Source: Rhodosorus marinus CCMP1338
Lineage: Eukaryota; Plantae; Rhodophyta
Assembly (NCBI GenBank): GCA_029953675.1
Contig: JAMWBK010000005.1
Location: 248,001-312,000, forward strand
Reading direction: 5' to 3'
Length of the DNA stretch: 64,000 nt
Part shown: in pieces, positions 1,189 through 42,111 of the stretch
Numbering within the stretch: position 1 is the stretch's first letter
Layout of the letters: the number at the start of each line of letters is the position of its first letter
Translations under genes and position numbers: made by a program
Notes under the pieces: generated by a model
Told to the model about the DNA's origin: nothing
The model's database searches: none
The model's input: only the letters and a program-made list of their open reading frames with translations

Positions 1189-3399
1189 CTAGAGGTTTCT
1201 TTTCTTTGTCGGCGTTGGCAAAGGAGCTTTCCATTCCCAAACATCGCAAGGTACATTGTACACCTTTTTCGGCCCGCTCTTCAATATTCTAGTGTCATAG
1301 CTCATTTTCAACTCGACTAGAGCCCACAGCTTCGTTTTCATCGCTTGATTCTCCTTGTCTAAGAGATCGTCGCGCAAGTGAGTATCCACGATGAACGCCT
1401 GATTTGCGCGGCCATCGTCAAAAGCTATCCTCGCCTCTTGCAAGAGTTCGAGCGCCTGTGGGAACGCAAACGTTTCCTTTTCGTTAACACAAGGATTCGA
1501 CAACAAGTAGCAGTAGCCGTTCAGGCTTTCTGGCAAACACACCTCTTTGTAAATTTCGTCCACTCGCTTCCAGCGATAGCGCATAGTCGAGATCATTACG
1601 GTCATGGTCGTTACGACCACAATCGCAAGCACGAAGCACGCTACCCACAGCTTGTGATTCCACAAGAACATTCTGAAGGCGCACAGTAGATATTGTCGCG
1701 GGCTCATCGACTGATACAAAAGCTTGCGACAATCTGTGCAGTTGTCTGTTCCCTTCGTCGTGAAGCTGACGGACACGTCCGATAACGAGCTTACATATTG
1801 AAGGGCCTTCTCGAAAGCAACGCTGAATTTTTCAGAGCTCGCGTTCAACTGAATCCAATGACGAGTTGCGGGTTCAGCAAATAGCATCAGACAACGTAAG
1901 TCACAGCAACAACTGCCCAAGTTCTATTTATCCCCGGGCAGTTCATTGCAGCGCGTTAGCACGGATCGAATTCGTTTTCATTACCTTGGGGTTCCTCAGT
2001 TCCAGCTCCGCAATGAGCTCTTCGGACGTAAGCATGTCAGATTCCAGTTCACCGCATAGTTTCTTTCCAGCAGCGGTGTCTAGTATACTTTTGATGTCAC
2101 GAAGCAGGGCAGCAGCATGCACTTGTATTTCTCTGTCCTCAACACAACTCGCTCGCCTCGGCACGTATCCTTTATCACACGTCAACGCTCCATCCTTACA
2201 AGTGCCATGCTCGGGGCATGGTCTGCAGCGCTTTGCGAAAGGGCGTCCTGAGATGTCCGACCAGAAAATTTTCGTCTATTTCAGTACGCCAGGCGATTCA
2301 TCATCATGCGCAGAGCCGCACGACAGATCGTTGCTTTTCAAAGTCAACAACAAGCGCTGATAAGGAGGCGGTAGCTTACGCTCTCCTCCGTCACAAAAAG
2401 GAAGCCGTTCAAACCACATCCAAACCGAGATCAAACCCGCCACGAGAGCAAGGAGTACGGAAACTCCAATCACAGTCCTCAAAACCTTCCTGACGAACAG
2501 CTTCTTGGCCTGAGACCGTGAAGTTATGTCTACGTGCGATGAACGGGGATAAACAAAACCCACAACCAAGGAAGAGCGAAAACTATCAAGGTCAGCAACA
2601 AGCTTAGCATACCCCCACAATACCCAAGGATCTTGCTAGGGGCAGTCATACTTGGGTTTGCCTTGTCATCAGGTCTTGAAGAGCGCGCCGCTGATTTCCT
2701 CATTAGCTGGTGGTGAGCGTTTGCGAGAGCCACCAGTTCAGCTTTCTTTGCTCTGGGTTCGTACGGAATCATCAACTTGGATAAGTGCTGTTTCAACTCC
2801 TTGACCGTGGACTGATTGAAGTCCAGTTCCACTATAGTGCGCTCCTCCGGTTCTCCATCGGAGGACCAGTCTGAGACGAACTCTTCGCCAGAAGCGCCTG
2901 AAGGGGAGAGAACCTCCTCTTTGACTTCGGGCGACGAGATGCTTCCACGTCCGAAGTCCACTTGACGGCGAACCTTCTCAGGGGATTGGAAATCAGGAAC
3001 GATCTGAATCTCCTGCTTTTCTGGCGACCCCATTGATTTTTCTATCGTTCCTAGCAACCCCGGCTCTATCCAGACCGATAACCGTCGGCGTGATCGTGAT
3101 GTTCCAGACTTTGGACTTGGTGTCGTCGTATCAACTGAGCCCTTTTTCCCATCCTTGGATTTCTCGACCGACGATTGGAAAGGGTTTATTTCCCGTTCGG
3201 GGGTTCGCGCGCTTGGCCCACCTCTCCGCGTCAAGTCATAGTTCTCGCGGACCTCTAAGGCCGTTCTGAGCAAGTCCTTTTTAACCGGGCGTGGCGTTCG
3301 TCCTGTGGAAGTAATTTCCGACAAAGGAACTTCTTGTCGCTCGAGAAATTCTCTCAGCTCGGAGACGGTCATCTCCTGTATCTCCTGCACACTTTCCAT
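1189..3399 (-). CDS. Man1/Src1/Heh-like inner nuclear membrane protein (HeH/LEM-like motifs, two TM helices, MSC C-terminal domain); multi-exon
   Basis: ATG at 3399. HeH-like motifs MTVSELREFLERQEV and TVKELKQHLSKLMIPYEPRAKKAELVAL; TM1 VIGVSVLLALVAGLISVWMWF; luminal CRPCPEHGTCKDGALTCDKGY; TM2; MSC-type HLRDDLL...LWALVE...DVWEWK. Confidence 0.8.
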
Positions 3400-4138
3400 G
3401 ATACCGATGTCCAACGGCCGTCTCGGCGTAACAGTTGTGAAGAAGCCGCAACGTTGAGTCTCACAATGAGGCTAAAACGAAAAACTCTTCCTCCCTAACC
3501 TGCAGCTCGAGGGCCTACAAGAGGGTACTTGAGGCGAGCGCAAGAAACAGGATCAGCCGCAAAATACAGCTGAACCTGATATATGCTCCTCTCGACTGCA
3601 CGTCCTCTCAATTCAGCTCTTCCACAGCACTCTCGCCAGAATTGAGCAGTAACCTCTGCAACCCGGTACCGGCAAGAAACCCGGTCGACTTGGGTAGACA
3701 ATCGAGAATTTCCCCCGACAACAACCTATAAATCAGTAAATTTCCGGTACAACATCAACAGACTCCTGTTCAAGCACCCACACAAACCTCTAGGACTACC
3801 GTCATCCTCGTCCTCCTTAAGTCCGAAGAAGTCTCGCCAGCCTACCTACCATCATACCGGCGAGCTTTTTGAACATTGCGGGCTCGCGCGCTTCTTTTAA
3901 ATAGCTTTCAAGGAAAATTCTCAAAGATTTTCTTCGAATTAGTATTAAAAAACAAAGACAAAAGGAACCATTGGTTTCCAAAGAAAATTGCTCATCATTA
4001 ATTGGACTCTAAATTCAGATTCGACAGGTGGAGTAAAATAAGTTGGTAAACGATTACTTTATTTCTATGAAACTTGCAGCTTTCTTACAGTTCTGCTTAA
4101 CCCCCTCTTGGACGTGCTGTACGTCATCCATTGGCGTA

Positions 4139-4156
4139 CTAGTTACTAGTAACTAG
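4139..4156. repeat. Perfect 18-bp palindrome CTAGTTACTAGTAACTAG
   Basis: The sequence equals its own reverse complement. A second 9-bp hairpin (TCGTTACTG-GAA-CAGTAACGA) lies at 4253-4273. Confidence 0.9.
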
Positions 4157-4353
4157 GATTCGTACATAACAAATTTTATGGATCCCACTCTTACCCGGTG
4201 CGGACTCATGTTTGCTGAGCGTTCACTTGTGCACTCGCCGAACCATCGAGTGTCGTTACTGGAACAGTAACGAGCTCTTACGACAATAGAGGCCTTGTAC
4301 GTGGATTCTGGGAATATCTATGCATGGATCAGAACAAGTTGAGGGTTCTATGC

Positions 4354-6706
4354 CTATAAACATATCCGGGCTATTGCCTGTGGGTTGTGAGCACATTGCT
4401 CGAGAATCGTAATCGAACCCGCGAGCTTTGCGGACGGCCAGTCACCCGGATTTTGAGGTATTAAGGAATCCTTTGATCTCAGGATCAGTGCCAGAAGGCT
4501 GCCAACCTCGTGCTGCTTCCGTAGGTATTGGGGATTCCTCAATAACTCGCGAAAAGGAACAAACAATACCTGGAAATCTTCGTTCCTGAATTCTCTTAGC
4601 CAATTGGATATCCCCCTTGCCCATCTAGGATGCGTTCGCGGAGTTCAAAGGAGAAACAGTCAGAGACTCTTCGTTGTCAGGGCCTTGGTAGTACTCACGC
4701 TAAGTGACTTTGGCGACTACATCGCGAATTGGTTTCTTCTCACCTTCCCACCTTGAAAAGCATACCCAAGAGCCAATCTCCTGGCAACTACCGATGTCGT
4801 CCTTCCCCAGACTGCAGACAACAGCTGTGGGTTCGTTGCTTTAAGCAACCTCAGAAACTGGAATGCTGCCTGCGCCATGCCAGAGGAGGTTCCACTAGGA
4901 TGTGACCTGCTCACGAGGAACGCGTACGCGACTTCCGCGTACCGGTCAAACGCATAGGCATTCTGTCCATCATCACCTATTTGATGTTGCATTCGTTCAC
5001 AGATCGCATTCAAAACGTCGTTATATCGAACGCATCCAGGTGCACGTTAGAAGCGCACCTCCTTCGTAATCCAGAGTAACAATGACGTGGTTCGGGTGCC
5101 CAAGAGTTCCCGGGGTGTCCAGCGGGATCCTTCTAGTCACACGAAACCCGTCTCCTTCAATTAAGTCCCCAGTCCTCTGCTGATCACGATATGCTTGTCT
5201 TCCAAGCTTCCAACAATCCGCAAACCACACAAAGGACAGGCCAGAGTCGGTCCAAACATGGTTGTTCCCGGAATAATCACCTTCCCCGGCCGTCCGGCCT
5301 ACTATCAGAGCAGGTCCCCTTCCGGGGAGGGTTGCTATTCCCTTCGGAGCAATGGTTCCCCGCGTCATGACTGCACTCCGCAAAAGCAGGTCTTGTGTAC
5401 CCCTGGGTGATCGACAGGAGAGGTAGGACCGCTAAGATCTCTCAATGGTTCGTTGTTTGTCCCTGGCATGAGGAGATTAAGAAAGTAGGGTGACATACGC
5501 AAGAGCTCGGGACAACAAAACTGTAACAGCATCTCGAAACGACTCAGTATTGAAACAGTCACAAAACACCAGATCCGCTTTCCTGACGAAGTAGAACCCT
5601 GTTTGCTCGTGTGCTAGGACCTGCCGTCCGGCTTGCCGTGTCAGCGTTTGGCTTTTGGTGAGGCCTGCTGCGGCGTACACAGTAATCTGAGGTTCACCTT
5701 GTCGAGAGAGAAAATGTACTAGAAATTTTGAGCTTTTTTCTTTTGATACTCGCACGCTTGGGAAAGATCAAGCCTCTATTGCTCGAGACCTGTGCGTGGT
5801 CACTTACCAGAGTCATCTTCGTCTAGGGGCTTTAGCATCATGTTCATGAAAACAAAAAGCAGCGGATGATCGACGACGACTCTAACTCGCGTTCTAATTC
5901 GACTCAGCGAGAATACATAGCCATCTAGCACGTACTTGTGATCCAACCTCTGGAGGTAACCGTAAACGATTTCTTTCCACAGCATGTCCTTAACGTGGCC
6001 AGGGCCGCGAAAACATTTGGGCTGTTCCGCATACGCACGGAAATGCCGAACGAGACTGCTCATTTGAGTCAAAACGGCAAGGGAAATGCGTCACCGTGCG
6101 TTTTAGGTGCCGTTCCAAATCACCTGACGAGTATCATATTCATCGAACTTCATTGCCCGCATAGAAGTGATGTTGCTTGTTGTCCTGTAGGGGTTTCTGA
6201 TCCGCGATTGGGAAATATCGACAGCTGCAACTTGTGGAGAGTATACTGACCCCACTTCTTCAGGGCCTGCTCGGTAATCATCCCCATCGTGCATTGCCCG
6301 CGACTTCTCCGAGGCTGACTCCGGCATGTCGTGCGCGCGTTTGAAGTATTTGGCTTGCGGGGCGACTGCAGTGGTGATCGGGCCATTCCTGCGAAAATTC
6401 TAAAAACGATGTCATTTTTCGAGACGAAAACATGGTTGTTATCCCGTTTCAGGCTATAGTCGATCCTCCCGTTTTATCCGTCAAAGAGTGGTAGGAATGT
6501 TCGTGTAGCACCTCTTTCCTCGTCCGCTTGACCTGTCTTCCCGCGCTAATCCAGTCTTGATACTCGGATTCAGTTAGCTTCTTCGGAGCGAAGATGGATC
6601 GCACTTTGGCCCTTCCACTGTTTCTGCTTTCACGTTGGCGGGGAGCCTTGATAGAACTCACAGAGCCGTTCCATCGCCTTGCAATCCACCTCACAGGAGA
6701 AGACAT
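4354..6706 (-). CDS. Multi-exon hypothetical protein, no recognisable domain
   Basis: A chain of protein-like ORF segments bounded by GT/AG sites. The last junction reads in frame (RRLALG|WARGISNWLREF...RICL*). The Arg-rich N-terminus from ATG 6706 resembles a transit peptide. Internal exon limits and the start are uncertain. Confidence 0.55.
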
Positions 6707-7482: not shown

Positions 7483-9339
7483 TTAAGACAAGCGCATTTC
7501 GAGATGCTTGATATATGCTTGTTGTAATTGACACCTAAGGAGGAGATTGCTTGGTCGCACTTGAACCCGAAATTCCAATGATGGGCACGTTTCGCCACTG
7601 CCGATAGACCTCAGAGAGCGCAGGTCGCCCATGGTACAAAATCTGTTCCTACCCCATGAGTCGCCTCGACGAAACCTTGCCGTGTTCCTAAAACTGAAGT
7701 TGTGAACTGGAGCGCCGAGCAGTTCAACGCTGTACTCGAACTGGACCTCTTCCAAGTCAACCGTAGACTCCGAGAGAGTTAGGAACACCCCAAATGGTAG
7801 CTTGCTATCTGAACCATCATCAGACAGATAGTACTGCACGCGGAAAAACAGAGAGAGACGAATAAGTACTAGCGGCCAGGGGGCTGTCGTATTAGTCGGC
7901 TCGGCATAGGTAATCCTTCGACCCGCAAGATGGGAATCGAACGCATTCCTGACGTACCCTGATCCTCAACCGCCATTCAAGTCCGAAAACCATAAGCGGT
8001 TCGGACAGAATGGACTTCTCCATCCCATCGGGAGAAGATGAGTCCAATCGCATTGTAAAAGTCTTGGAAACAAATGACTGGAACATTCCTTCCTGGTAGG
8101 TGTCGAAGCTAGTGGCCAGAGTTTCCGTGTTGGCTTTTGCAGTTGCCTACGGAAAAGCATAGCTGTTCAGCGCGGTTCTCCCTAAGAGAAAAGTTGGAAA
8201 CCTCTTCAAAGCAACGCTTTGCGCTGTGACGGACCTTCACTTTGGACAGGATTTCGGCAAGATTTTCTCGAATATCTGCCTCTGAGCTACCCAGATCCAC
8301 TTCGACGCCTGATTCAACGTCGTACTTGATCATGCTGATGCTGTTCGTAGCCCATGCGTTCAGGTAATTGAGATCCTGATCCTGGGTTCTAAGCGAGGTC
8401 GTGTACTCCTCATGGTCTCTTGATATTTGAGAACCAATTACCTCTGTCGTCTGCTCGATGCCATCCAGAGAGTTGATCTAAATAACGCAAATAACGCACC
8501 TTGAGAAGTAGTGATCGGGTCCTTGAATGTGAAAACCAACATGCTTTTGCTCGACACCTACCAAGACCTTGTCAGATTTTTGTCTAATACCTCTGAGCTG
8601 TGACTTCCACGATTCAATCCAGAAGTCGATCTCCTCAAGCGTGGATTGAATTTCCTTCCTCAGCTCTGCCTTCAACTGGCCAACTGAAAGTTGCCGGAGG
8701 AGCGCTCGTTCAGCAAGAGACTCCCACTTGAAGGAGAGGAGAGCAAAGGGAACGCTTTACCCTTGCGGAACACATGACCTCTTCTTTCAGGACAGAGTAG
8801 TGCGCACTCGGGGCACACGAAAGAACAGTCCGTTTCATCATAATAACTGCGCGTCAATGAAGAGGTCAAGCCCACCAGGCAAATAGTAGTCAATACGCTG
8901 CGCTTTTCTGAGTCTAGCAAGCATCACGCAGGAGGCTTGAGCTGATGCCGAAGTGGCGGATACCTTATCTCAAGGTTGTGTTTCGTGCATCTACTCTCAG
9001 GTTCTGACAGTAGTCTCTTGATTTTCTGCGTGACCTAGAGTACGTTCGTAACGAATTCAAAAGTCGCTCAAAACCCACATCATAAAAAAAAGAGCAGGCT
9101 CCTATGTGAAGAATCTGTACCTCCTCGATCAGACGTCCACTTCCCAGATTCTGCAGGACCACCGGTGCTCTGCACAGCGGACATGACGACTTTTGCTCTA
9201 GCCATTTCTCAACACAAGCCCTGCAGAAACATGTCCCGCATGCAGTACACAACTTCGGCTCCACAACCCCATCAAAGCATATCACACACTGGAACAAACC
9301 CTGGAGGATCTCATCTGCAGGCTCGTCCTTCTCGGCCAT
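7483..9339 (-). CDS. TRIM37: TRIM37-like E3 ubiquitin ligase (RING, B-box, coiled coil, MATH); multi-exon
   Basis: RING FQCVICFDGVVEPKLCTACGTCFCRACVEKWLEQKSSCPLCRAP; B-box CTKHNLEI|YYDETDCSFVCPECAL; MATH SEPLMVFGLEWRLRI...GVFLTLS...FEYSVEL...SWGRNRF; tail EFRVQVRPSNL...QAYIKHLE. The RING-B-box-CC-MATH order is diagnostic of TRIM37. Confidence 0.85.
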
Positions 9340-10708
9340 CCCATCATCGCGGTACACCAAGACCCACCGGAAATTCAATATCAACTCGTCATGCTTTCCT
9401 TCATCTCATTTCATATTCAAGCGGGGCAGACCTCAAAAGCCATATAGCCTTCAAATCCTTATGCTCCCCACAAGCATACATACCTCCAAAAGCTAAAGCA
9501 ATCAACCCCTTCCTCAACGCAAATCCTTCGTAGATGACCGACAATCCCCCAACATTGTCCTCATAAAACCAAAACAATTTCAAAGCATGAAACCTTTACC
9601 TACCCCAAACGTACCTCCAACACCCCCCCCCTTCCCTGTTCCAAAATTTCCCACCCCCCCTCAATAAAAAGTCTTTCAAATATATAACAGCCGGTCAATC
9701 TTTTCCATGTCCCCGTCCAATGTTACCACAGCTGAAAAAAAGTTTCTACTCGTCGTAATTTACACAGGAAAACTTTGTTTTTCTCCTGATTTTCCTGGCT
9801 CGGGATTTTTCGCATGTCTCGGTAAAGTTATTGTTTGAGACTACTGAAAATTTAATGAAATTTTCATCCTTACGAGAGATTTTCCACAGTTCTCATCCAA
9901 AAATTGGATGTGCGAACTGGATTTCTCGATCTTTTCCCCTTTTCTTGTTGCATTGGTCATATGTTAAGAATTGACCCTTTTTGGGAGGAAGACGTGGCCG
10001 GGGGATTAGAGGGGGATAAGGGGGCATGGGGTCACCACCTCGTGCGCTGTTTTAGGGGTCGGTTATTAGTTGCTACTCACAGCGTATCATATTGTTTGAG
10101 GGGGAAGAACTATCTCTGTGTGATACTTCCCTTCGAGAATTCGCCTATGAGGCTTGACGGTTGGTGTCTCCCACCCACAAGAGGCGTTATCTGAAAACGC
10201 AGTCCAGTCTCCGCAAGGGGAGTTGCGATTTTATTTTCAAGTTTTTATCAATCCGCGCGAGATGTTGGTTTTAGCTCTACTATCCGGTTGACGTTTTTGG
10301 GTTGCGCGACGGCCCGATTGATCATATGTAGCAGACGCTTTGCTTTGAGTGGGGGTTCCTTCCTATGATGATGTTGGTATCCGAGTAAAAAAATGTGGTT
10401 GTTCAAACATTCGAGCGTGTCTGTCAAGGCTTTCTTCATATGGGGTGATAACTCGTGCACAAAAAAAAAAGCACGTTCGCTTATGTATTCCAGTTAGAAT
10501 ATGGTTCAGTTAGCTAAAAGTTTTCCTAAAAGCAATTTCTGACTATGATACAATCCCTGCGTCAGGTATCTGTGCTTATTTGGTCGCACAGCCCTGGCAG
10601 GGTTTTGACGCGGTTCAAGCAAGAAGATAAGGTAAAACGGAGACCTATGGCCAGTTTCTGACTATCTATTGCATGGTCCTTGCTGCCTGAGCATGACCAA
10701 ATGGGTAC

Positions 10709-11452
10709 CTATTCCTGGACGGGCGTGTTGGGAAGAATAATAGGCGCTTCGGGGTCAACTTCATCCGTCAACCCAAGCCTCTTCAGCAGCTTATAGAACT
10801 GATCCTCGGTGATACCTTCTTCGAGATCATCACAACCAGCCTCACTCATCATGCTTTCTATCTATGATTTGGAAAAATACGGAATAAATTCAGCTTATGC
10901 GAATTAATGGTAACGCTATCCAACCCAACAAGAACTGTTTCGAGAATGGCGGGTTCTCGGTGAAGCACAAGACGCAGGAAAAAAAAAAAATTCTCTCGCA
11001 TACTCTGCAACTCTCACCTCGAGCTCACAGACGTCCTCCCCGATCGCGCTCATGACCTTCGCGATGTCGTCTTTGCTTACGGTGTTTGTATTTGACCTGT
11101 CGAAGATATTGAAGCAATCCGAAGCAAACGGAGTGACATCCTTATGCTTCTTGTAATAGCCCGATATCATGGACAAGAACTCTGCAAACTCTAACTCCTC
11201 ACTATCCTCCTTGCAATAAGCTTTCATCATGCTTTCCGCTAGACCGGAAGCGTCCCCATCCTCAAGCACCGACAGAAGTCCTTTCAGCTCGTCAATTCCC
11301 ATAGTCCCGCCATCGTCGCGGTCGAAATAATTGAAAACGTATCGCAGCTTTCTCTGAATATCTCTGCTCACTCCCAAACCTCCTTTCCTCGCGGAGTTCG
11401 CCGAAGACGACGGAATCGACTTCTCCGATCCACGATCACCAAACGAGTTCAT
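10709..11452 (-). CDS. Calmodulin/centrin-like EF-hand protein; 2 exons (11452-11018, 10861-10709)
   Basis: EF1 FDRDDGGTMGIDEL and EF3 FDRSNTNTVSKDDI. An in-frame GTGAG...TAG intron joins to IESMMSEAG...PVQE*. Confidence 0.85.
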
Positions 11453-12304
11453 TGCACCAGATTCTCTCTCTCCTAACCAATTCTACAACCTACACTGATA
11501 AATACCCAAAGACAAAATGCTCCTACCAGTGCACCTCAAATACCCTAACTACCTTTTCAAGCTTGCTACTCTCAACCCTTGTCCGCACCTTCCCTCATGA
11601 CACCAGCTCCAATTCTGCTACCAGTTCCCAAATGTCATTCTTCTTGGCAATGAAAGATAACTGCATCAGCAAGAACGCAAAATGGTGGGGGGATACAGTA
11701 CCAACAAATAAATACGAAAACGCCCAATATCCATTCTTGATATGAAATTCCAACTTTTGCAGTCCTTTTTTCCCCAAAGCAAATTGTGATTGAGGGGTGG
11801 GTTCAACAGGTCCAAATGTTTCCTTTCTTATGGGAATTGGTTTCTCCCCATAGAATTTTATCATAATATACGTTTTTACGCCTGTTCTTCAGAACAACAC
11901 GTCGATTGGCTGGTGAACTGAGAGTACGCTAAGAACAAGCCTATTCTACCAATTAAAAGTCTTAAGTATTCTTGCGCTTTACATAACGGAGTTTGGTTCG
12001 ATGCCGATTCCAAGCTGGCCAATGATAGTACTTAAAAATTTGGGAGTTATATGATTGGTTAGAAGGATTCTTACCACTAACATGTGTTGGATGCAATGAA
12101 ATAAGACGAGGGGATTGGTTACGAACACAAAAATTAGCCAATTGCTATTTAGCAGACTCAACAAGAAGTTAATTTAATGAAATACGTGCTAAATTGCATA
12201 CGCTTTGCTCTCAGATACATGCGGCTGGCAAACTGCCAATTCTGCTGGGGTACATGCCGTCCGTGCTGTGAATCGGGTTATCGATCTGCGTGTGCCGTTG
12301 ATAC

Positions 12305-12968
12305 TTAAAGCCTAAGCTTTTCAACTTTTTCGTCCGCATCATCAAGCTGAGACTCGTCTTCAATCACTACGTCGCAGACTTCTGGGATACGATTTTGCAG
12401 ATATAGGGAAACACGGGCCAGCTGTTATAGAGAGACGGAACACCGTACAGGAGGATCCTTTGCGATCAGTAAGAACATCCGAGTTCGCTTTGTGTCGGCA
12501 GCTATCTAGCGCTTACCACGTCACTTTTTTTATGCCAGAATCTCCCGGTAAGCCTGAGAACCACGGTCACGCCGTCGAGCTCGGCAAGGCTTACATCCCT
12601 ATTCACAATGGTGAAGAGCACGATCTTTAGAACTACGGAGGTTCAAGAAGAACGCACGTTGAAGCAAGGAGGTCAGTCGCTTCCTTTGCTCTGGTGATAA
12701 CAAAAAAATAAAAACCCTACCCTGTGATCCCAACTTCTCGATTCTCTTCAGAGTTCCCAAAAATAGTCCCGAGCTTAGTTTTCGCTTCTTCCAGGACGAT
12801 GTTAACATTTTCTTCCGATAAATAGGTCGTGTCATCCTGGCACCGCACCACAACTCTCCGGCAACCCCGTGCCCTACTAGTTCGCAACAAACGAATTGAA
12901 GCCGGACTGCTTTGAGTTGCGTTCAGCAATCCACCACCGACAAAGCTATTGATAAAACCAACATCCAT
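12305..12968 (-). CDS. Plastid-targeted NFU/NifU-C-fold protein without the CxxC motif; 3 exons
   Basis: Transit peptide MDVGFINS...VVRC. Spliced core LSEENVNIVLEEAK...GITG|DVSLAELDGVTVVLRLTGRFWHKKSDV|LARVSLYLQNRIPEVCDVVIEDESQLDD. Confidence 0.8.
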
Positions 12969-13261
12969 TCTATGTCAACCCGATCAGTGTCCGTTCTCCA
13001 AAATTTAGATCGTAGGAACCCAAGCAAGCCGATTGCATCCCCGCGTGCAATCCAATCCCTCCTCTGAAGATTTCAATGAGAGAGAGCTTGTCGAGGGAAG
13101 TGCAATCCAGCCGCGCCCGAAGACACGTCAACACGCTATTTCCGGCGGGTTCGCTAAAGGGATGTTGAATTCTTACTGAAACGGGCTGCGCGTTCGATGC
13201 CAAAAGCTGCTCTGCTACAACGACTATGAGATTTCAGGTTCTAGCATTATCAAGAACGAGA

Positions 13262-15606
13262 CTACGCCTGTATGAGCTCCAGAATTGCTTCGGGCACTTC
13301 TGTCTTGTGGTCTTGACATTCGCCAATGAATCTACGGAGCATTTCAAGACCCTCGGCATCGTGTCTAAAAGAGCTTCGAACCTCCTCTTTGGAGATGAGA
13401 GCCAAGAAGGCCGATGCAAAGTCCCTCGAGTGTGGTGGGCCCTATTTAGACGAAGAGAAGGGGAATGTGAGCTATGCAGCCGGATCCAGCAGGACCACTA
13501 CTGTTCTCAAGAGTGAGGTTGAAAACTCCGCGTACCGCCAGACCCAACATTAGCTTGACGAAGTTCCTTAACAGGCTAATATCTTCGCTTGCCCAGTTCG
13601 AAACTACCTCGAGCACTGGTAACGCGATTCCGAGTCTCGAGATATCAATCAAGTGCTCCGTATAGATCTTCCTGATATCCAGCCATGTCAGCTCATCGAG
13701 CTCTGCTGATTTGCTGTCGAATGCTTTTGCAGTAACTTGAAGGACATCTTGACGCAGAAGTGGGTGAATCTCAGCGATTCTTGTCGATATGTTCAGATAG
13801 TAGGGAACGACAACCTTACGACAAGACAACATCCGATCCAAACTGCTCAGCGCGGGCATTCGATTAATCAAGTTGGTTCATCGTAGAAAGAAGAAGTTCC
13901 TCTGACTGGAGGAACGCTCATACCTTTAGGTCCATAGGCTTCGGGTTCTCGCACAATCCATGCTGGATCCAAATAAGCACTCCAGCGGAAACGCATGCAT
14001 GAACAATCTCCTGCTTGAGAGGGCCGAGAACGCGTCTGTGAAGGGCCGATCTCGGGACTCCCGAAGGATGGTTGGCGCAAAGTTCTGAAGTCTGCTTCAA
14101 GGAGCTAGAGGAAGAACCAGGGCAAGATACAAGTTAGAAAATGCCACTTACACTTTGACATAGAACCTTGGTGGCAACAACAGTCTCACTTTGACAAAGA
14201 TTCAGCCGTCGAACTTTCCGTAGATATAGACTTCGCGATGACCTCAGAGAGCAGCTCCCGACCCTTTGGGTCAGTTGCACCGTAACCCCCGGGCACAAAC
14301 AGAGCAAAGAGCAGCCTCTGCAAGACTTGAGGAAGACAAATTGGGTCCGACAGACCCTTCCCTCCCTTCTTCACGTAGCTTTTAAGCACTTCGATATCCT
14401 CTAATGTGGGAGTTCCAAACATCGTCTTCATGAGAGCATCGAGGATCTTTTCAACGTCATCTGGTGCATGTCGAATCGAAACGGGGTCAAGCGGGTTAGC
14501 CCTCTCGCGCTGTTGAATCGGACAGAAGTCTTTGCGAAAGACGGCAACCAGAAGCAAGCTAGTGATGAATGGGACAGTAACTTTCTCACCATTACCGTTC
14601 CAGGAGAATAGCAGAGCGATGCGGAGAACAAAGGCCAAACCCTGCTCTGATCCTGAACTCTGCTTTATGGCCTCTGCTTGTATCTCCTGAAGAATACGGC
14701 TTAGGAGCTTTTGTTTCTGCCCTGATGAGTTCCGTAACGCCTCGCTGAGCACCCTAGACGTATACACAAACGACCTGTTCGGTCGGACGGGATACGAGTT
14801 GCGTGAGTATCAAGTCTGTCCTTGCTCAATTCGAGGGATGTACGCTGAAGGTGAGGGCAAATTTACCGTTCGTCAAAGCAAGCGAGCTTCGCAAGTCTGT
14901 TCATTTCCGCTTGGAATTCTGCGTCAGTAGTCGCAGAAGTCGCCCCCAACACACCCTCAGTTAATAATGTAGTAAATACGTGAGGGTCCTCAAGGGCCGT
15001 GATGTTCATCCCATTGCCTGACGTTCCTCCAATATCTGAAACGCTGATCGCCATGTCCATCCTTCGGATAGCGTAATCAAGGACTGCGCTTGACTGATAA
15101 GGGGCAAAAGTAGGAGGAAGTGGACAGATTGAGGCATTAGATCATACATGCGTGAGTGAAGCAAGTGGAGCTTGCTGTGCCGTATTGGTGGCTTTGGCCG
15201 TGCTTGTGAATACCTTTGTGCCGCTGTTCAGTTTACGCAGTACAGAACACCAAAAAGGATCGCGGATCATACTCTCAAGCCAGTCTGGAGCCTTCCCAGT
15301 CTCCAGGAATATCTGATCCGCTAGTTTAGGATCGAATTTCTGTATCACAAGGTTTTCCAAGCACGAGTTTGCCACCTCATCCGATGCCTCACCAGAATCC
15401 TTCTTCAGCGCAGTTAGCCAGATGGACAGCTGTGCACAGGCTGCCTCATATCCTACGAAGCCATCCACAAGCGCTTGCCGCACGTTTTTCTCATCACCCC
15501 CACAACTCAAGTACTCCTCTACTAAACCAATCACACCTGGATGGCTGAGTCGATCCACACGCCTGAGCTCAACTAAGAGCTCTTCCGCCTTCTCAAGATC
15601 CCCCAT
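13262..15606 (-). CDS. NELFCD: Negative elongation factor C/D (TH1-like); multi-exon
   Basis: Colinear with TH1L as I recall it: EYLSCGG, QKFDPKLADQIFLETGKAPDWLESMIRDPFW, LDYAIRRM, IAEIHPLLRQDVLQ, ALPVLEVV, EDISLLRNFV, GPPHSRDFASAFL. ATG at 15606, stop at 13264-13262. Confidence 0.85.
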
Positions 15607-16576
15607 GACCCCAATCTCAAATTCGTCAACAAACCCAAATCCTAATCAATCGATGACTTTGGCAACCATCTATTGTATCCAGAAGTCACCACCTTGCCCT
15701 TTCCCAATTTAAGAAGAAGCGCAAGTTCAGTCCACCGGCGACTAGTCAAGTTGAACTGTTCCTTGCTGTCACTTTCTTTATCTCCCGCGATAACAAGGAC
15801 AAGAGCCTCCAAGAGCAGGATCGGCAGAGGAAAAGGCCAACGCGTAACATCTATGAGCCAACCCGCCCAATGTCGATGTCCTTTGCTGATAGATGCAAAG
15901 CGTTATGATGAGCTTTGCTATAGTAGCATGGACACAGTGGGGCGGTTGAACAACCTCGGAACGAATTCCGCCAAAAAAAAAATAGCTTGAGAATGAGGAA
16001 TGAGGAATGCAAGCTGGTGGTGTGGGTGGACATGCACCTTTGAAGCACATAGTTCCGCCGGAATATCTTGCAAGTCGAGGAAGAGCGTTCTTCACTTCCA
16101 TCTGTGACGCAGCCGTTCGGACTGTTCGTAACTATTGTTGATAGTTTTGCTAGGGAGGGACATTCATGAAAGAGACTGATTTCCAAAGTCAACTCGCATC
16201 AGCTGTACTGAACGTCCGAACTCCGAGTGTTGAAGGTCCCCCACAACAAACAATAGCTCGACGGTCCGGAAACACACAGAGTTGAGAGGGAAGATGCTGA
16301 TATATGCAAGTCAACTGCTCAACCGAAACGGCGCTCATACAATTTTGATTCGAACGCCAAGTACAGGCTCAAGTCCATCTCTTGTGCGGTCATTACAATC
16401 GTTATTCAGCAGTTAAAAAGCACCGATATTTACAAATCCTACAGTTGACCTCTACCCGTGGAGCTCCGGGTTTCTCTAAGGTCTTGCTCTACTCTATGTA
16501 CAGGTTTCTTCCTCACTGGATCATACAAAACTTATCTCCCGCATTATCATCAAGCTCTCAACGGCGCTGCGCATTT

Positions 16577-19500
16577 TCAGCTATCGTCAGGATCATCAAA
16601 CGCGCGGGCCAGGTCGATTGGAACCTGAGCATGAAGTGCTTCCGTCCTTCGTCTTGCAGCTACAGGATCCTTAAACTGGCCCTGGGATTTCCCGGGAATG
16701 ATGAGCGGTTGGTCTAAATCCAGCACAGCTCGAACCTTTGCACTTCCCTCGGGAACTCCGAAAGCGATTCCCAGCTTCTCGCGGATGAATGTCTTCAAAG
16801 CGTTCCTTCCGCTCTTCTTGCCAGATGATAGTATTTTGCTCACGAGCTCCTCGACGGATTGCGCAGAAACGTTCGAAGCATAAACGAGCCAGGACGCGGA
16901 TTGCTGTGGCGAACTAGTTATCACACTCAGCAGAACCGTAACCACACTCTCATGTACGGAATGAAGAGATGCCTTGCATAGCGCCTGCATACTAGCTTGC
17001 AGTACCGGTTCTGGCTGAAACAAGGCCATTCCCTGCAGTGCAAAAGCGTGAATATTAGTGGGCAAGGATGCAAACTTTTCTAATGTTGCGGTGGCACACC
17101 TTAAGAATTGTTTGGGACGCGCTCTCCGAAGCTTGCGAATCGAACGATGACATTGACTGTAGCAACAACGCTCGGAATCCCTCCGGAAAATGATCTTCAA
17201 GCCCTTCTCCCAATCTTCCCGCTGCGCGTAAAGCGGGTTCCCGAACGGCGTCCACGCAAGCTCTCTGCACAAGTCTCCAAGTGTGGTCCAACGCAATGCT
17301 CTCCGAGGTGCTCTCAACTGAATTCAATCTAGAAACGCCGTCAACGATCCTCGCCTGAATTCCGGTCACGGTGTTCACTAACGAAGCACAGAACGTCTCC
17401 CCGCAGGTGCGGAGGACCAGCCGCACCACTACACGAACAAACGAGTAGATGCTAACGGGCTCCAGAACAGAAACAGACTCTAGGACATTCGAGAACACCA
17501 TCTCCTGTACTATGAGACCGTCTGAAAGATTCTTTGAGCAAGCATTTGCAATGACCTCATAAGTAGAGTCGCGCAGTTTCCCAACGAACTGTTGTCTGGC
17601 AACGCTCGCTTCGTCTCCCAAAGTCACCCCCATCTGCTGCAATCGATCCATCGCGTCCTTTGAACCAGGAGCGGCCTCCAAGTTCAGGATCACAACTAGC
17701 TCTCGAGCAGTCGGTGGAGGATTTAACTCGTGAATCGATCGCATGAGCAGTACCATAGACTCCAGGACTGCCGGGAAAACTTTCCTGTTCAATGCACCTG
17801 TTCACCGGCGGAAGCTAAAGATTAGTCCGAAACCTTCCATGGTACAAGACGCTGCCAAAACCACTCACTTGTGCGAACGCCGTGTGAAGCGACTTCGCAG
17901 GTATGGACGACCTCAGACAAACGCTCCCTAGCAATGACATCCATACTCAGCGCGTTGAACTTGCTCAAGTTTTCAAGCACTCCGGCCGCTCTAAACTCGA
18001 CCAACATGTTCAAAGTTCCCTGCAACAGAGACTCAAGATACAACGACTGGTCCGCCAAGGATGAGAAGTGGTTGGAACCATGTGCAGCAGCCTCCAGTAG
18101 CTGCAAGCGCTCCTCATGCCTCAAGTCGTCCCCTAAACGAATACGGACAATGGGTTAAGACTCCCTGTTCAGCTTCCAACAGCGAGAATATCAATTTCGT
18201 CAACTCGGGTATCCGGCACTTACTGGAACTATCGAGCAGTGGAGTTATCCTAGGCAGAAGATGAGGTAGGAGAATTGCTAGATCCTCTTCCCCCAACCTG
18301 CGAGATACTCTCAGAAGAGAGACGGAGCTCCTCATTCTCACATTGCAAGTTCCCTCGGACAGTTGATCAACCGGCGTTGCTTTCTCTTCTGGCGCTCTAT
18401 ACATTGAGAGAGAAAGCAAAACCTGACGCAGCGGAAGAAGTCCGAAGCGATGGTGAGCCCTATGCTCTGGAATCCTCAAGCACTAAGCACGCTTGACACA
18501 AAGAGACTCATGACGAAACCACTGGATTGGACCGCCGAACGCCTTCTACCCCAGAATATCCGTTTCCGTTGCCTTACCTCGCTAGCTTCAAGCCAGGGGA
18601 GGCCAAGAGAGACCTTTAAGCATGCGAAAGCGGAAAGTGCGTGAGCGGCGAGTGCAACAAGTTCAACAGGGCAGCTGCTTTTTGCCACGGCTTGCATGTC
18701 CCAAAAAGCCTCTCTGAGGAACTCTCTTTCTGCCGAATCGACGTCCTGCAATGTGGTCACTACTCCATCCACGAGAACCGTGAGGCCTAGTAGGGCTGTC
18801 CAAAGATCTATCGTTAAACCAAGAGACTGGTTGCCCTCCTGTTCAAAGGAGAACCCCGAATTCGGGCGGGGGGATTGAAATTCCGAAGCTGCTCTGCTGT
18901 AAAGGATACATAGCCTCTTAAGTACCTGAGAAAAGGTTCAAGGTGCATAAGCAAAATGTAAGTCTCCAATGTGCTCTCCTCCGCTGACTGAGAAAAAAAG
19001 AAACAACTGATGACTCTCGATCGCGTTTTCCATTCGGCGACTGCAGTACCACTGTCTGTGAAACTTTGACTGCCGTTCTTGCACAATCTATCGCGGATGA
19101 TCGTGCCTTAACGAAGGCCGCGAGAATTTCCTCCGGCTGTTCTAAATCATCGGATAGTAGCAAGTTAATTTGTTTTCTGCCCGCTCTCTTTGCTCCCTCT
19201 ATTCGTGCGAGGTCATAAGCCATGACCTAGGAAAGGAATAAGAACATTTCCACAATGTTAGTCAGCATCACCTTTCTCCTCTCCAATGCAAGTACCACAG
19301 ACTATCACGTGGCGCCTGAGATTTCTGTCCATGCTTACAGAGACTAGCGCACTCGCCATGTCCGACATCAAGTTCCGATCTGAAAACGTAGTCCGCAGGT
19401 AAGCGTGCCAGAACGCGACTGCCTCGGAGACAACGGCCAGGCTTCTATGGCAGACCATGCGAAGCATCATCTCTAGAAATGGTAGCAATCCCGTACGGAT

Positions 19501-20925
19501 GTCATCGCTTGAAGCTCCAGAATGCTGCCCAAAGGCAGGTTCTAGGAACGACGTTCCTTGTCGAAGAAAATTCAAATAGGATGGAAATTCTTTAAGCACG
19601 CCTGCACTCGAAAGCCGGTTAAAGCTTGACATTTAGGCGTTGAAGCTGTACCACCAGTTGCGAAGATGTGACACAGACGCCTCTGAAACTCTGGATGGTC
19701 TTCGGCGTACGCAGCCTCAAGCGCGTGAAGGTCAATTATGGTCTTCATTAGCAGTGGAAAGTAGTTGTCACGAAGCAGCTTCTCGCAGTTTCTAGCAGAT
19801 GAACCTGATGCAGCAAGTTGCATGAAGAGAACGGTTACTGGTTCAAGTTGGTAAAGGAGCGAGTTTGCCCGTGTTTCTGGCATACCTCGTGTTGAGACTA
19901 GAATATCCAAGCAGTCCAAGGCAGAATCTCGAAGCTCTTCGTCCGCGAGGAGATGTACACAGGCCTCAAACACGTTGAACTCGAAGACGACGTAGAGCGG
20001 TGAAAAGTTCACTAAAGACTCTATTGCTGACAGAGCTGCGAGAAGGAGGTCCGCGTCGTGCTGCCCAGCTTGCCTGAAGATAGAACGAGGGGGGCCACGC
20101 ATTATCTGAGCTATTCAGCAGCCGCTGGGGAACCTTGGAAGACTCGGGGGTGGTCATCAGGGCAACCGTAGTGCAGAAGGCCCAGTCACTGCGTACCTTT
20201 TCGTATACTCCTGGGTGGCCAAGCCACAGAGGAAAGGGAAAATGGTCTGCAATGAGACGACAAGGGCCGCAGATATTTTCTGTTTTCTGCTGGCGACGAT
20301 TGTCTCCTGTGAGTTAACAACCTCGTCGCCCAGGAAACGGATTGCGGCGCATGCTATCTTTGCTTGGTCGTCCCCTGAACTACCAATCTCAACCTGCGAG
20401 TGTTTTTGAAGGCGTTGCCAGAGCGAGAATGTTGTTGATGTTCAAAATGAGTGCAACAAATGCAATGCAACGATCATCAGCAGCGGTGGAAACATTATCA
20501 CGAGAAGCAGATATCTCCAGACTAACCAGTTCATCAATGAACGTCGGCCACCTCTGAGGCCAATCTCTAACGGCAATGTCAGCAGCAACCAACGCAAGCG
20601 TTTCCGCCACGTTGCTTCTCCATCCGGGCTTTCTGAGGAGATTAAACAGTTGCGTTTTCGCTACGGATGCGGTGTGTTCATCCAGGGTCTGCCATTTCGT
20701 TTTGATGACGCCATCTCTCCAGAGATGCATGGCGATCAGTTTCGCTGCATCGCTGAACCCCGCACCGTTCAAAATCTCCACGGCTAGAGATATCAGCAAC
20801 TCCGGCGAAGACTCCTGCTTCAAGGATTCGAGGTACTCCTGGACCTGTTTGAGAACGCGCTCCTCTCCAGTACCAGATTCCAACAGCGATCCCGCCTCAG
20901 CGGTCCTCGCCAAATGTTCCTCCAT
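16577..20925 (-). CDS. XPO5: Exportin-5-like karyopherin-beta; many introns
   Basis: Importin-beta N-terminal helices, then the Xpo1-domain motif DIAVRDWPQRWPTFIDEL. HEAT-like helical exons run over 4.3 kb. The C-terminus KTFIREKLGIAFG fits XPO5 better than XPO1 or XPOT, but the paralog call is tentative. Confidence 0.7.
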
Positions 20926-24531: not shown

Positions 24532-26520
24532 ATGGATGTTGGGTTCATTCTGAGCGTTGGGAAATCCACGGGGGTCGCGAGTCGTTCGGGACAAGCGAAA
24601 TGCTGCAGAAGACGAGGGTTGATTATGAGGGCTGAGGAGTCCGCAGCTGACATGAACAAGGAGCACGGGCCGCGTGGAAAGAAGGGGAAGAAGAAGAAGA
24701 AGAAGAGTCAGGCGGCTGAGGCGGAGCCCGTAACAGAGAAGCAGACGAAGCCCGTATCTGAGGAGAAAAAGGAGGCTGTCGCAGTTGAGAAGGAAGTGGA
24801 GCCCGTGGCTATTGAAAAGGAGGAACCCGTGGCTGAGGGAAGGGAGCCCGTGACCGAGGAAAACGAGGATCCCGTAGCTGAGGAGGAGAAAGAGCCCATA
24901 GCTGAGGAGAAGAAGGAACCCGTGGCTGAGGGAAAGGAGCCCGTGGCCGAGGAAAACGAGGATCCCGTAGCTGAGGAGGAGAAAGAGCCCATAGCTGAGG
25001 AGAAGAAGGAGCCAGAGGCCGAGGAGAAGAAGGAGCCCGTCGCTGAGGAGAAGGAGGTGGAGCCCGTCGCTGAGGAGAAGGAGGTGGAGCCCGTCGCTGA
25101 GGAGAAGGAGGTGGAGCCCGTCGCTGAGGAGAAGGAGGTGGAGCCCGTCGCTGAGGAGAAGAAAGAGGAGCCCATCGCTGAGGAGAAGGAGGTGGAGCCC
25201 GTCGCTGAGGAGAAGGAGCCCGTCGCCGAGGAGAAGGAGGTGGAGCCCGTCGCTGAGGAGAAGAAAGTGGAGCCCGTCGCTGAGGAGAAGAAAGTTGAGC
25301 CCGTCGCTGAGGAGAAGAAGGAGCCCGTCGCTGAGGAGAAGGAGGTGGAGCCCGTCGCTGAGGAGAAGAAAGTGGAGCCCGTCGCTGAGGAGAAGAAAGT
25401 GGAGCCCGTCGCTGAGGAGAAGAAAGTGGAGCCCATCGCTGAGGAGAAGAAAGTGGAGCCCGTCGCTGAGGAGAAGAAAGTGGAGCCCGTCGCTGAGGAG
25501 AAGAAAGTGGAGCCCGTCGCTGAGGAGAAGAAGGAGCCCGTAGAGGTTGAAAGGGAGGATCCCGTAGCTGAGGAGAAGAAGGAGCCCGTTGCGGTTGAAA
25601 GGGAGGATCCCGTAGCTGAGGAGAAGAAGGAACCCATCACCGTTGAGAGGAAGGAGCCCGTCGCCGTTGAGAAGAAGGAGCCCGTCGCTCAGAAAGAGGA
25701 GGCCGTGGCTTGGCAGATTAGCCAACCCGTTAGTTTCGAGACTAGTGAAATCGCGTCTGAGATGCAGGACCCCGTCTCTGAGAAGCACGACAGGGCTGCT
25801 GAGCGGGTCGAGCCGGATGTTATTACGTTGAGGTGAGCGTTTGTCATTCTGTCATCTGAGATAATGAGAGTGTTCTCTGACATCGCTGTGTATACACCAG
25901 ACCTTCGTACAAGCTGCAGTATGGAATCCTGGGTACGGCGGTTTGGCTGAAGGTGCTCGGAATCGACTCTGCGGCGATTCCCGTCGCTCTGCTGGGAGCT
26001 TTTCTGTTCTATCAAGTGCGTCGTTCAGAGCGCCCTCCCGCCTGCAGAGGAACTTTCAGTCCATTTTTTCTTCAATACTAACCATGACTTTGCTCATTAT
26101 GATCTGCTGCTCTCGCCCAGGCTAAAGCGGTTAAGTTCTCCTTCTCGCGCTCGAGCTTGATAGTTTCCAAACCTCAAAAGAAGGGCCCAGATGTGGTGGT
26201 TGGTGAATGGTAAGAGGTTTTCAAGGACAACCACCGTGATCCTCTGTCTAGTCGTATCAGATCTGAGTTTGAATATACATGCTTTTCTCCTTAGGGACTA
26301 TCTGACATGGTCAAACTGGGAAATGTGGTGGCCCAAAGTACCCATCTTGGTCTATTTTAAGGAAATCGGAAGCATCCATTTCTTTCCTATCATCTTCAAC
26401 CCTGATGAACTACTGTACTGCCTACAAACTCGCACGGGCCTGCCAAAGGTATCCTACCCAAGCAAAGACCTCCCCCCGGGCGCTTACAATAAGCAGGGAG
26501 ATAAGTCTCTCGATGAATGA
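24532..26520 (+). CDS. Plastid-targeted DUF3119-family membrane protein with a long EPVAEEK repeat region; 4 exons
   Basis: Exon 1 is 24532-25832, intron 25833-25900, exon 2 is 25901-26015, exon 3 starts at 26121, last exon ends at 26520. Spliced C-terminus TLRPSYKLQYGILG...LLGAFLFYQ|AKAVKFSF...W|DYLTWSNWEMWWPKVPILVYFKEIGSIHFFPIIF matches the DUF3119 pattern as I recall it. Confidence 0.85.
24724..25710 (+). repeat. Coding minisatellite, about 40 units of 21-27 nt (E/D-P-V/I-A-E-E-K-K/E-V)
   Basis: Core unit GAGCCCGTCGCTGAGGAGAAG(AAA/GAG)GTG. All units keep the frame. Higher-order 31-aa (x2) and 16-aa (x2) blocks flank a homogeneous core. Confidence 0.97.
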
Positions 26521-38067: not shown

Positions 38068-40129
<2,062 letters not shown>

Positions 40130-40828: not shown

Positions 40829-42111
40829 TCACTCCTCAATACGTCCATAGAACACTCCCTTCAGGAGAATCTTCTTCGGGGCCTTTGCTCCCATGTCGGT
40901 ATCCGAAAGCTGCTCAGAAACGAAAACTCCAGCGATCTCTTTCGTGTCGGGGTCAATCTTGTTCACTGCCATCTCGATGGAACCGTCAGTGACGTCGAAC
41001 ACCTTGTTAGTCTCCTTGAAGAGCTCATCCTGTCCCTCCGCTCCGTCAGCTTCCCTCGCGGGAAGCGCGACGGCCATATCATATCCGGTTACTCCACCAC
41101 GTCCCTTCGGGTCAAGGAACAATCCAGTTCTGTAGGACGGAACGACGAAGTCTCCACCTAAAAAGGTCCAATCCAAAAGAAGGCACACACGTCTTAGACT
41201 CCTCAAATCCAAACAGATACATTTGATCTGAGGCCATTCATGGCTGGACTTCATTACCGAACTCAGTTGCGTTTGTGATGGTGTTTCCAGTTCCCTCCGA
41301 TGTGGCGACAAGCTCCTTGATCGTGAACAAGAACGGCACTCTCTCTCCTCCAGGCAGTTGGACAGTGGTCGCCGCATAGTCGATTCCGTCCTTCTCAGTG
41401 AAAGTGATCTTCCCGCCTTTGGCAACGAGATCACCCTCGACACCGGCCAAGGAGTAAGTTGCGCGAGTCATCAGCTTGGTGCTAACGAATTCTCTCTTCA
41501 CCTCGCCCTTCCTCGAGGTCTTCTCTTCCTCCACCTACAAGTGAGACGCGACGCGTCAGCGCCCAGCAGAACTCATCACCAGAGCTGAAGCCAACTGCTA
41601 TTAAAATCCAACCTACCTGGAAAGTCTTGGGCTCCAAGCACAGATCCACCAACTTGTAGACCTTGCCTTCTTCAAGCTTGATGTTTCCCTTCGATACTGC
41701 AATAACTTCCGGGCATCTGTTCGCGGTTCCTGTACCCTTGACCTGCATGTATGTCAGGTTCTGGATGTCACCTCTGGTAAGAGCAGTAGCTGCCACAGGC
41801 ACCATGAGGCTTCCAGCAATGGCTGCCAGCGCAGCTGCGTTGGCGACCTTCTTTGAGTCATCAGTAGCACGCTTGATAACGGTGTCAACGATGTTCGCGG
41901 AAACTTTGAAAGTCGAAAAGCAAAAAAAAAAGAAATAAGCGAGGATCTCTCATCCACAACCCCTCCTACATCTCGTCAGGGATACCCCAAACCAAATAAC
42001 CGAAAATGCCGCATGCCAAATGATAACAAGCTTACCAACCGTGCGCGACCGGCTGCTCACTGCCGCTCCCTGTCTCTTCGAAACCACTCCAGCTCCGTTA
42101 ACAAAAGCCAT
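40829..42111 (-). CDS. psbO: Photosystem II oxygen-evolving enhancer protein 1 (PsbO) with a bipartite stroma/lumen transit peptide; 4 exons
   Basis: [88 protein letters not shown]. The lumen signal ends in ATA. Confidence 0.97.

Follow-up and report, generated by a model that had tools for sequence, protein, structure and literature searches.

Could a red alga keep NELF-dependent pausing that land plants lost? The question is raised by a gene in the stretch of DNA that we analysed as a whole (hereafter the window, 64 kb, positions 248001-312000 of contig JAMWBK010000005.1), in which a sequence-only reading had recognised the negative elongation factor subunit NELF-C/D (TH1) and had suggested that the lineage may have retained such pausing. 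That reading took the source for a probable red alga, and so it is: the window is identical to part of Rhodosorus marinus GCA_029953675.1, the contigs of which belong to the pseudo-chromosomal 31.2-Mb nuclear assembly of strain CCMP1338 (prefix JAMWBK) described by Lee et al. 2023 (PMC10250338).

According to the survey of Chivu et al., NELF-B and NELF-C/D are widespread in eukaryotes and probably formed a core already in the last common eukaryotic ancestor; yeasts, C. elegans and land plants lost them secondarily (PMC11482795). The phrase "scattered protist homologs" in the sequence-only reading understates how wide this distribution is. Homologues of NELF-A and NELF-C had also been found in Chlorella and Dictyostelium by Vos et al. 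2016, who proposed an early eukaryotic origin and later losses (PMC4940160). In the final NELF-C/D list of Chivu et al., 11 red algal species are represented by 18 sequences (PMC11482795), including the Rhodosorus orthologue, which is entered as CAMPEP_0113958460 with its Pfam TH1 match, and sequences from Bangiopsis sp. CCMP1999, Purpureofilum, Compsopogon, Rhodella, Madagascaria, Chondrus (XP_005713172.1), Eucheuma, Gracilaria, Hildenbrandia and Porphyra (OSX76596.1). Red algal NELF-C/D, that of Rhodosorus included, is already catalogued and the evolutionary inference is published, not new; our additions are modest, and consist of a corrected intron structure and evidence for a NELF-B in R. 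marinus.

Structure of the NELF-C/D gene

The coding sequence of NELF-C/D occupies positions 13262-15606 of the window on the minus strand (JAMWBK010000005.1:261262-263606 on the record), exactly the ends proposed by the sequence-only reading. In the corrected model it comprises seven exons separated by six GT-AG introns and encodes 571 amino acids. The gene of a sister strain of R. marinus is represented by three transcript contigs (L001-L003, IMG sample 3300017118), as well as by an MMETSP transcript and a UniProt entry. The features of the gene are listed here.

15607..15801, minus strand: 5' leader, transcribed over about 195 nt or more; the alignment of the sister-strain contigs runs from 15801 downwards
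15214..15606, minus strand: exon 1, 131 codons from the ATG at 15606, with most of the conserved N-terminal domain; exon 1/2 junction spliced in L001
14867..15093, minus strand: exon 2, 227 nt, ending in ...LACFDE/R; 92.1% identical to L001, gapless
14590..14774, minus strand: exon 3, 185 nt
14461..14589, minus strand: intron 3, 129 nt, GTGAGA...CACCAG; in frame and stop-free in strain CCMP1338
14190..14460, minus strand: exon 4, 271 nt; exon 4/5 junction spliced in L001
13924..14104, minus strand: exon 5, 181 nt
13536..13814, minus strand: exon 6, 279 nt, encoding ...DISLLRNFVKLMLGLA; exon 6/7 junction spliced in L001
13262..13441, minus strand: exon 7, starting with GPPHSRDF... and closed by the TAG stop at 13264-13262

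The predicted promoter of the gene is upstream of 15801. Scans of the 64-kb window against Rfam and for tRNA genes gave no matches.

A first model, derived from reading frames alone, had six exons and five introns and encoded 614 amino acids; it was dropped because 43 of its residues are missing from the transcript-derived protein of the sister strain. These surplus residues correspond exactly to the 129-nt GT...AG segment at 14589-14461, which is in frame. The 571-aa protein deduced from transcripts of R. marinus MMETSP0011 lacks the segment, and the alignment with that protein becomes gapless once the segment is excised. Because its counterpart in the sister strain is 132 nt long, is only 74.6% identical and contains in-frame stops, we conclude that the segment is an intron (intron 3). 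Being in frame and free of stops in CCMP1338, it would mislead ab initio annotation into adding 43 spurious residues. The intact spliced frame noticed in the sequence-only reading holds across the GT-AG introns, with their number corrected from five to six, and the conserved blocks that it quoted are all present in the translation: the N-terminal block KFDPKLADQIF...PDWLESMI lies within exon 1, and the C-terminal block DISLLRNFV...PPHSRDF straddles the last intron.

Expression and constraint

The NELF-C/D gene is expressed and under purifying selection. At the nucleotide level, the three transcript contigs of the sister strain are 89-93% identical to the window, and they are spliced at the predicted junctions of introns 1, 4 and 6 (three of the six), with introns 2, 3 and 5 retained; the MMETSP protein, which is fully spliced, covers all six junctions. 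This protein (CAMPEP_0113958460; EukProt EP00189_P001308) is transcript-derived, has 571 residues and is 94.9% identical to the window copy without gaps, from which it differs by 29 amino acids, the exons having diverged by about 6-8% at the nucleotide level. It covers the same Pfam TH1 span, and its score is given as 194.3 bits in the table of PMC11482795. The two copies differ in origin, since that of MMETSP0011 comes from a transcriptome and that of the window from a genome assembly, which provides the exon-intron structure. Two fragments of the sister-strain gene are found in UniProt (A0A7S3EE02 and A0A7S3ECI8), both under the name "Uncharacterized protein".

Between the strains, exons are 92-96% identical, with exon 6 the best conserved (96.4% nucleotide identity), and retained introns 75-85%. 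A Nei-Gojobori count for the window copy against the sister strain gave a dS of 0.208 and a dN of 0.024 (dN/dS 0.114). Transcription and purifying selection together indicate that the locus is not a pseudogene.

Family identity and relatives

Against the Pfam TH1 profile (PF04858), for which the cut-off is 24 bits, the corrected 571-aa protein reaches 197.8 bits (E 4.5e-58), and the full-length match extends from position 36 to 577 of the 579 in the profile. A missing TH1 match would have refuted the call by the terms of the sequence-only reading, and on this point the call clearly stands. The 614-aa first model matched the same profile positions (36-577 of 579) with 189.4 bits. Taken singly, exon 1 reaches 72.8 bits, the penultimate exon (exon 6) 40.5 and the last exon 15.9. 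Apart from TH1, no Pfam family came within range for this protein. Among solved structures, human NELF-C/D chains match at E 1.3e-39 (phmmer) along two colinear stretches, residues 3-247 and 388-599 in the numbering of the 614-aa model, the second of which becomes 345-556 without intron 3. Chance cannot account for similarity of this order. The regions matched by individual chains are the following.

15061..15600, minus strand, interrupted by intron 1: residues 3-142, phmmer match to 8jj6_D, E 6.9e-15
13310..14233, minus strand: residues 345-556 of the 571-aa protein, exons 4-7, phmmer match to 5l3x_B, E 4.3e-20

These are the best-conserved parts of the protein. The first is homologous to the NELF-C/D chain of 8JJ6, the structure of a NELF-BCE complex (PMC11881899), in which a 147-residue fragment was crystallised with NELF-B and NELF-E. 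The second has its homologue in the C-terminal portion of that region of human NELF-C which was crystallised with NELF-A in 5L3X, the NELF-AC structure (PMC4940160). No similarity to the human protein was detected in the middle third, either in the Pfam TH1 searches with single exons or in the phmmer search of the PDB. Human NELF-C/D (TH1L; PDB 6GML, 7YCX, 8RBX, 5L3X and 8JJ6) is of similar length and colinear with the algal protein, and the two share the blocks FDP..AD..F, P.WL..MI, DISL.R.FV and PP(Y/H)S..F, although their identity is only in the low 20s percent and the middle third cannot be aligned. The gene is the nuclear NELF-C/D (TH1) orthologue of Rhodosorus marinus (Stylonematophyceae), expressed and constrained.

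With exon 1 as the query, an exhaustive HMMER search of representative sequences gave 143 matches at E <= 0.001. Six of the matches were looked up: two are clusters named "negative elongation factor C/D" at the source, three carry no functional name, and the remaining cluster is the gene of the R. marinus sister strain, which is called "Uncharacterized protein" in UniProt. By BLASTP, identity to the window protein is 95% for the sister strain, 43% for Bangiopsis sp. CCMP1999 (E 2e-154) and 27% for Compsopogon, while the other eukaryotic homologues compared, including that of the red alga Chondrus (22%), are 22-25% identical. The other red algal NELF-C/D proteins belong to the same family as the Rhodosorus copy and their similarity to it broadly follows taxonomy. 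Because the close relatives track red algal classification, vertical descent with fast divergence seems the natural explanation. The florideophyte copy tested, that of Chondrus, is no nearer to Rhodosorus than homologues outside the red algae; NELF-C/D is thus fast-evolving within this group.

A divergent NELF-B homologue

The R. marinus genome encodes a divergent homologue of NELF-B (COBRA1), as judged from profile searches: a 462-aa "hypothetical protein [Rhodosorus marinus]" (NDN08_007764), found in a database search with a precomputed COBRA1 domain and located at JAMWBK010000002.1:1475173-1485235, in the assembly that also contains the window (GCA_029953675.1). It scores 31.0 bits against Pfam COBRA1 (PF06209; cut-off 22). 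In the PDB, a profile made from five red algal NELF-B-like sequences has human NELF-B as its sole match at E <= 1; the match reaches E 7e-15 and is colinear with residues 95-386. The human protein has 580 residues, compared with the 462 of the algal one, and the two can be aligned only over residues 95-386. Because tblastn of the NELF-B-like protein against the 64-kb window gave noise only, the gene must lie elsewhere in the genome.

The preliminary NELF-B alignment of Chivu et al. includes sequences from Rhodosorus (UTEX LB 2760), Compsopogon, Purpureofilum and Bangiopsis (PMC11482795), and fragments taken from it score 30.6 bits (Rhodosorus) and 39.5 bits (Compsopogon) against COBRA1, above the cut-off of 22; the PDB matches of the Rhodosorus fragment (UTEX LB 2760) are NELF-B chains only. 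The summary table of the same study has NELF-B absent from all species of Proteorhodophytina except one, and its final NELF-B file contains no Rhodosorus entry (PMC11482795). Since the table and the final file omit it, the NELF-B assignment made here rests on a modest Pfam score and a profile search. The presence of a NELF-B homologue in the R. marinus genome makes the published view that the subunit is nearly absent from red algae look too strict.

NELF-A, NELF-E and the pausing machinery

The sequence-only reading had proposed a genome search for the other subunits, for which the outcome is mixed: a NELF-B-like protein is encoded, whereas NELF-A and NELF-E were not found, as the NELF-A, NELF-A-like and NELF-E files of Chivu et al. 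include zero red algal sequences (PMC11482795). Both of these partners are present in human. Animal NELF-A has an HDAg-like region that binds Pol II and animal NELF-E an RNA-binding RRM; the HDAg-like domain has been found only in animals and Capsaspora, and strong evidence for NELF-E is limited to metazoans (PMC11482795). NELF-E also carries a DNA-contacting basic helix that is needed for inhibition by human NELF (PMC11881899). Because NELF-A and NELF-E are lacking among the red algal sequences of the survey, and inhibition by the human complex depends on the basic helix of NELF-E, a long-lived, regulated pause of the metazoan type is unlikely in Rhodosorus.

The supplement of Chivu et al. 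lists Spt4, Spt5 and Paf1 as present in Rhodosorus, and species that have core NELF only show raised pausing indexes in the same study (PMC11482795). The subunit complement of Rhodosorus matches such a "core NELF" (NELF-B and NELF-C/D, no NELF-E), known from unicellular eukaryotes of which Dictyostelium is an example (Chivu et al., PMC11482795). Dictyostelium, however, has a NELF-A-like protein and a PRO-seq profile, whereas the survey gives no NELF-A-like candidate for Rhodosorus; the literature that we searched contained no PRO-seq, NET-seq or depletion study of pausing in this alga.

A possible two-subunit NELF

How could these two proteins act? The N-terminal domain of the algal NELF-C/D could bind the NELF-B-like protein and thereby form a two-subunit "core NELF". 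Judging from human NELF, such a core would associate with RNA polymerase II during elongation, alongside Spt4/Spt5. It might then slow early elongation, with a weak or dispersed promoter-proximal pause as the outcome. The association of the two proteins is something that we infer only from the conservation of the domain homologous to 8JJ6. Taken as a whole, and with human NELF as the guide, a core NELF composed of NELF-C/D and the NELF-B-like protein that slows early elongation on Pol II with Spt4/Spt5 is the reading towards which we lean, with some reserve.

A true NELF-C/D orthologue could also have been kept for a job other than pausing, perhaps as a scaffold for different partners or at some other step in RNA metabolism, in which case NELF-dependent pausing of Pol II would not occur in this lineage. 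Such a role would suit a protein whose middle region has diverged past recognition, in a group of organisms for which the animal suppliers of Pol II and nucleic-acid binding, NELF-A and NELF-E, are without a sequence in the survey. It would also suit the published table, where NELF-B is largely absent from red algae and yet NELF-C/D occurs in 11 species, a pattern which suggests that NELF-C/D can persist without a recognisable NELF-B. However, the best-conserved part of the protein is the very domain that is homologous to the NELF-B-bound fragment of 8JJ6, and a NELF-B homologue does exist in the R. marinus genome, with relatives in Compsopogon, Purpureofilum and Bangiopsis. Core-NELF-only species also have raised pausing indexes (PMC11482795). 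We consider a non-pausing role the less likely reading. At the other extreme, Rhodosorus could possess a complete four-subunit NELF and metazoan-type pausing, with a NELF-A and a NELF-E too divergent for sequence searches. The near-omission of NELF-B from a careful survey, and its passing with a weak score only, indicate that divergent partners can escape detection. Conservation also extends to the counterpart of the C-terminal portion of NELF-C as bound to NELF-A in 5L3X (E 4.3e-20). Nevertheless, not even the "NELF-A-like" set of Chivu et al. has a red algal entry (PMC11482795), and a four-subunit complex strikes us as very improbable.

Both of these alternatives, like the two-subunit core, presuppose a functional host gene. 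The sole argument for a pseudogene, a contaminating sequence or a recent horizontal transfer is that database searches gave no NCBI-named protein for the NELF-C/D locus. But six canonical introns leave the frame intact, the sister strain transcribes the gene, dN/dS is 0.11, the locus sits in a 3.19-Mb nuclear contig surrounded by ordinary red algal genes, PsbO among them, and its nearest relatives are those of other Stylonematophyceae. Frame, transcripts, dN/dS, contig context and relatives effectively refute all three origins, to which we assign a negligible probability.

Returning to the core composed of NELF-C/D and the NELF-B-like protein, NELF-dependent pausing in the Rhodosorus lineage is plausible only in a reduced form. 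It is a tentative suggestion, and one that we would not yet favour, that Rhodosorus and probably Compsopogon, Purpureofilum and Bangiopsis keep a working core of NELF-C/D and a fast-evolving NELF-B, which would give a measurable NELF-dependent "proto-pause" in an archaeplastid lineage. If a functional two-subunit core were confirmed, R. marinus, a red alga whose 31-Mb genome is assembled to near chromosome level, would offer a photosynthetic test of ancestral NELF, that is, of what NELF did before NELF-A and NELF-E existed. Likewise, if both subunits cooperate, red algae would be suited to testing the two-subunit slowing of early elongation outside Amorphea, the supergroup of animals, fungi and amoebozoans.

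Neighbouring genes

Among the other genes of the window is one for nuclear PsbO, for which chain O of 7Y5E, presumably from Porphyridium, is the best-matching solved structure. It is followed by 8XR6 and 8WB4, presumably both from cryptophytes, and by 4YUU, presumably from Cyanidium; the other PsbO chains listed match much less well than 7Y5E. The PsbO presequence, which begins MAFV, lacks a signal peptide, in keeping with a primary red plastid. The window also contains a single-exon SLAC1 homologue, the 3326-nt locus of which, non-coding flanks included, exactly matches GCA_029953675.1, as well as a kinase ORF and an acidic repeat ORF.

NELF-B in Rhodosorus and other red algae

In a published survey of NELF subunits across eukaryotes, the summary table (Table S1) records NELF-B as absent in Proteorhodophytina species, with one exception, whereas in the preliminary alignment of the same study Rhodosorus, Compsopogon, Purpureofilum and Bangiopsis are each represented by NELF-B-like sequences (Chivu et al., PMC11482795). 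Sequences from two of these four genera, Rhodosorus and Compsopogon, were scanned by us, and both exceed the cut-off of Pfam COBRA1, the NELF-B family (22 bits). In Rhodosorus marinus CCMP1338 the gene lies outside the window:

L004 (JAMWBK010000002.1:1475173-1485235), 4001-6063: NDN08_007764, NELF-B-like protein

In the annotation its product has no name beyond 'hypothetical protein'; its UniRef label is 'Sister chromatid cohesion protein'. Compared with the MMETSP-derived Rhodosorus versions (P0163 and a fragment from UTEX LB 2760), the product has diverged by about 10%, against 5% between NELF-C/D and its sister-strain copy, so that the NELF-B-like protein appears to be evolving about twice as fast as NELF-C/D.

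Intron 3 and the 3' end of the NELF-C/D gene

Three minus-strand features concern the structure of the NELF-C/D gene and its downstream neighbour:

14461-14589, minus: intron 3 of NELF-C/D (129 nt)
12104-13441, minus: region where the sister-strain transcript contigs L001-L003 continue past the 3' end of NELF-C/D into the following same-strand gene
about 12500-12968, minus: downstream gene for a small protein, whose sister-strain version has 148 aa

Because intron 3 is in frame and free of stop codons, reading it as an open frame, or predicting the gene ab initio, would retain it as coding sequence and add 43 residues to the protein. The sister-strain transcript contigs also retain this intron, which there is 132 nt long and carries in-frame stops.

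The ATG of the downstream gene is at 12968, 294 nt past the NELF-C/D stop codon, and its first intron (12720 to 12599) is spliced in two of the three contigs. That NELF-C/D contigs reach this gene reflects either read-through transcription or overlapping UTRs that were merged by the assembler. The small protein matched nothing in Pfam at E <= 0.01; at its N-terminus it carries what resembles a plastid transit peptide (MDVGFINSF...).

Other genes in the window

The remaining features are as follows:

1189-3414: HeH/MAN1-type inner nuclear membrane protein
7483-9384: RING protein with a faint MATH match
10916-11452: EF-hand gene
16577-20925, minus: large multi-exon gene upstream of NELF-C/D, with Exportin-1-like (Xpo1) matches (2 exons)
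24532-25836, plus: acidic-repeat ORF, 434 aa
28083-29408, minus: SLAC1/TehA-type anion channel homologue, single exon, 441 aa (Pfam SLAC1, 95.6 bits)
39519-40115: protein kinase, first of two
about 40832-42100, minus: nuclear PsbO (manganese-stabilising protein), at least 3 introns, presequence MAFVNG...
44671-45984: flavodoxin/FAD reductase
48788-50014: protein kinase, second of two

The acidic-repeat ORF accounts for the spike in GC and skew at 24-26 kb. After a transit-peptide-like start (MDVGFILSV...), a 27-nt unit encoding the acidic repeat (K)EPVAEEKK(V) recurs in tandem about 26-30 times; the ORF matched no Pfam family, and the record contains no gene with an exactly identical product. 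The SLAC1/TehA-type homologue is the gene through which the assembly containing the window was recognised. Among solved structures, PsbO matches chain O of the Porphyridium entry 7Y5E (PDB) best.
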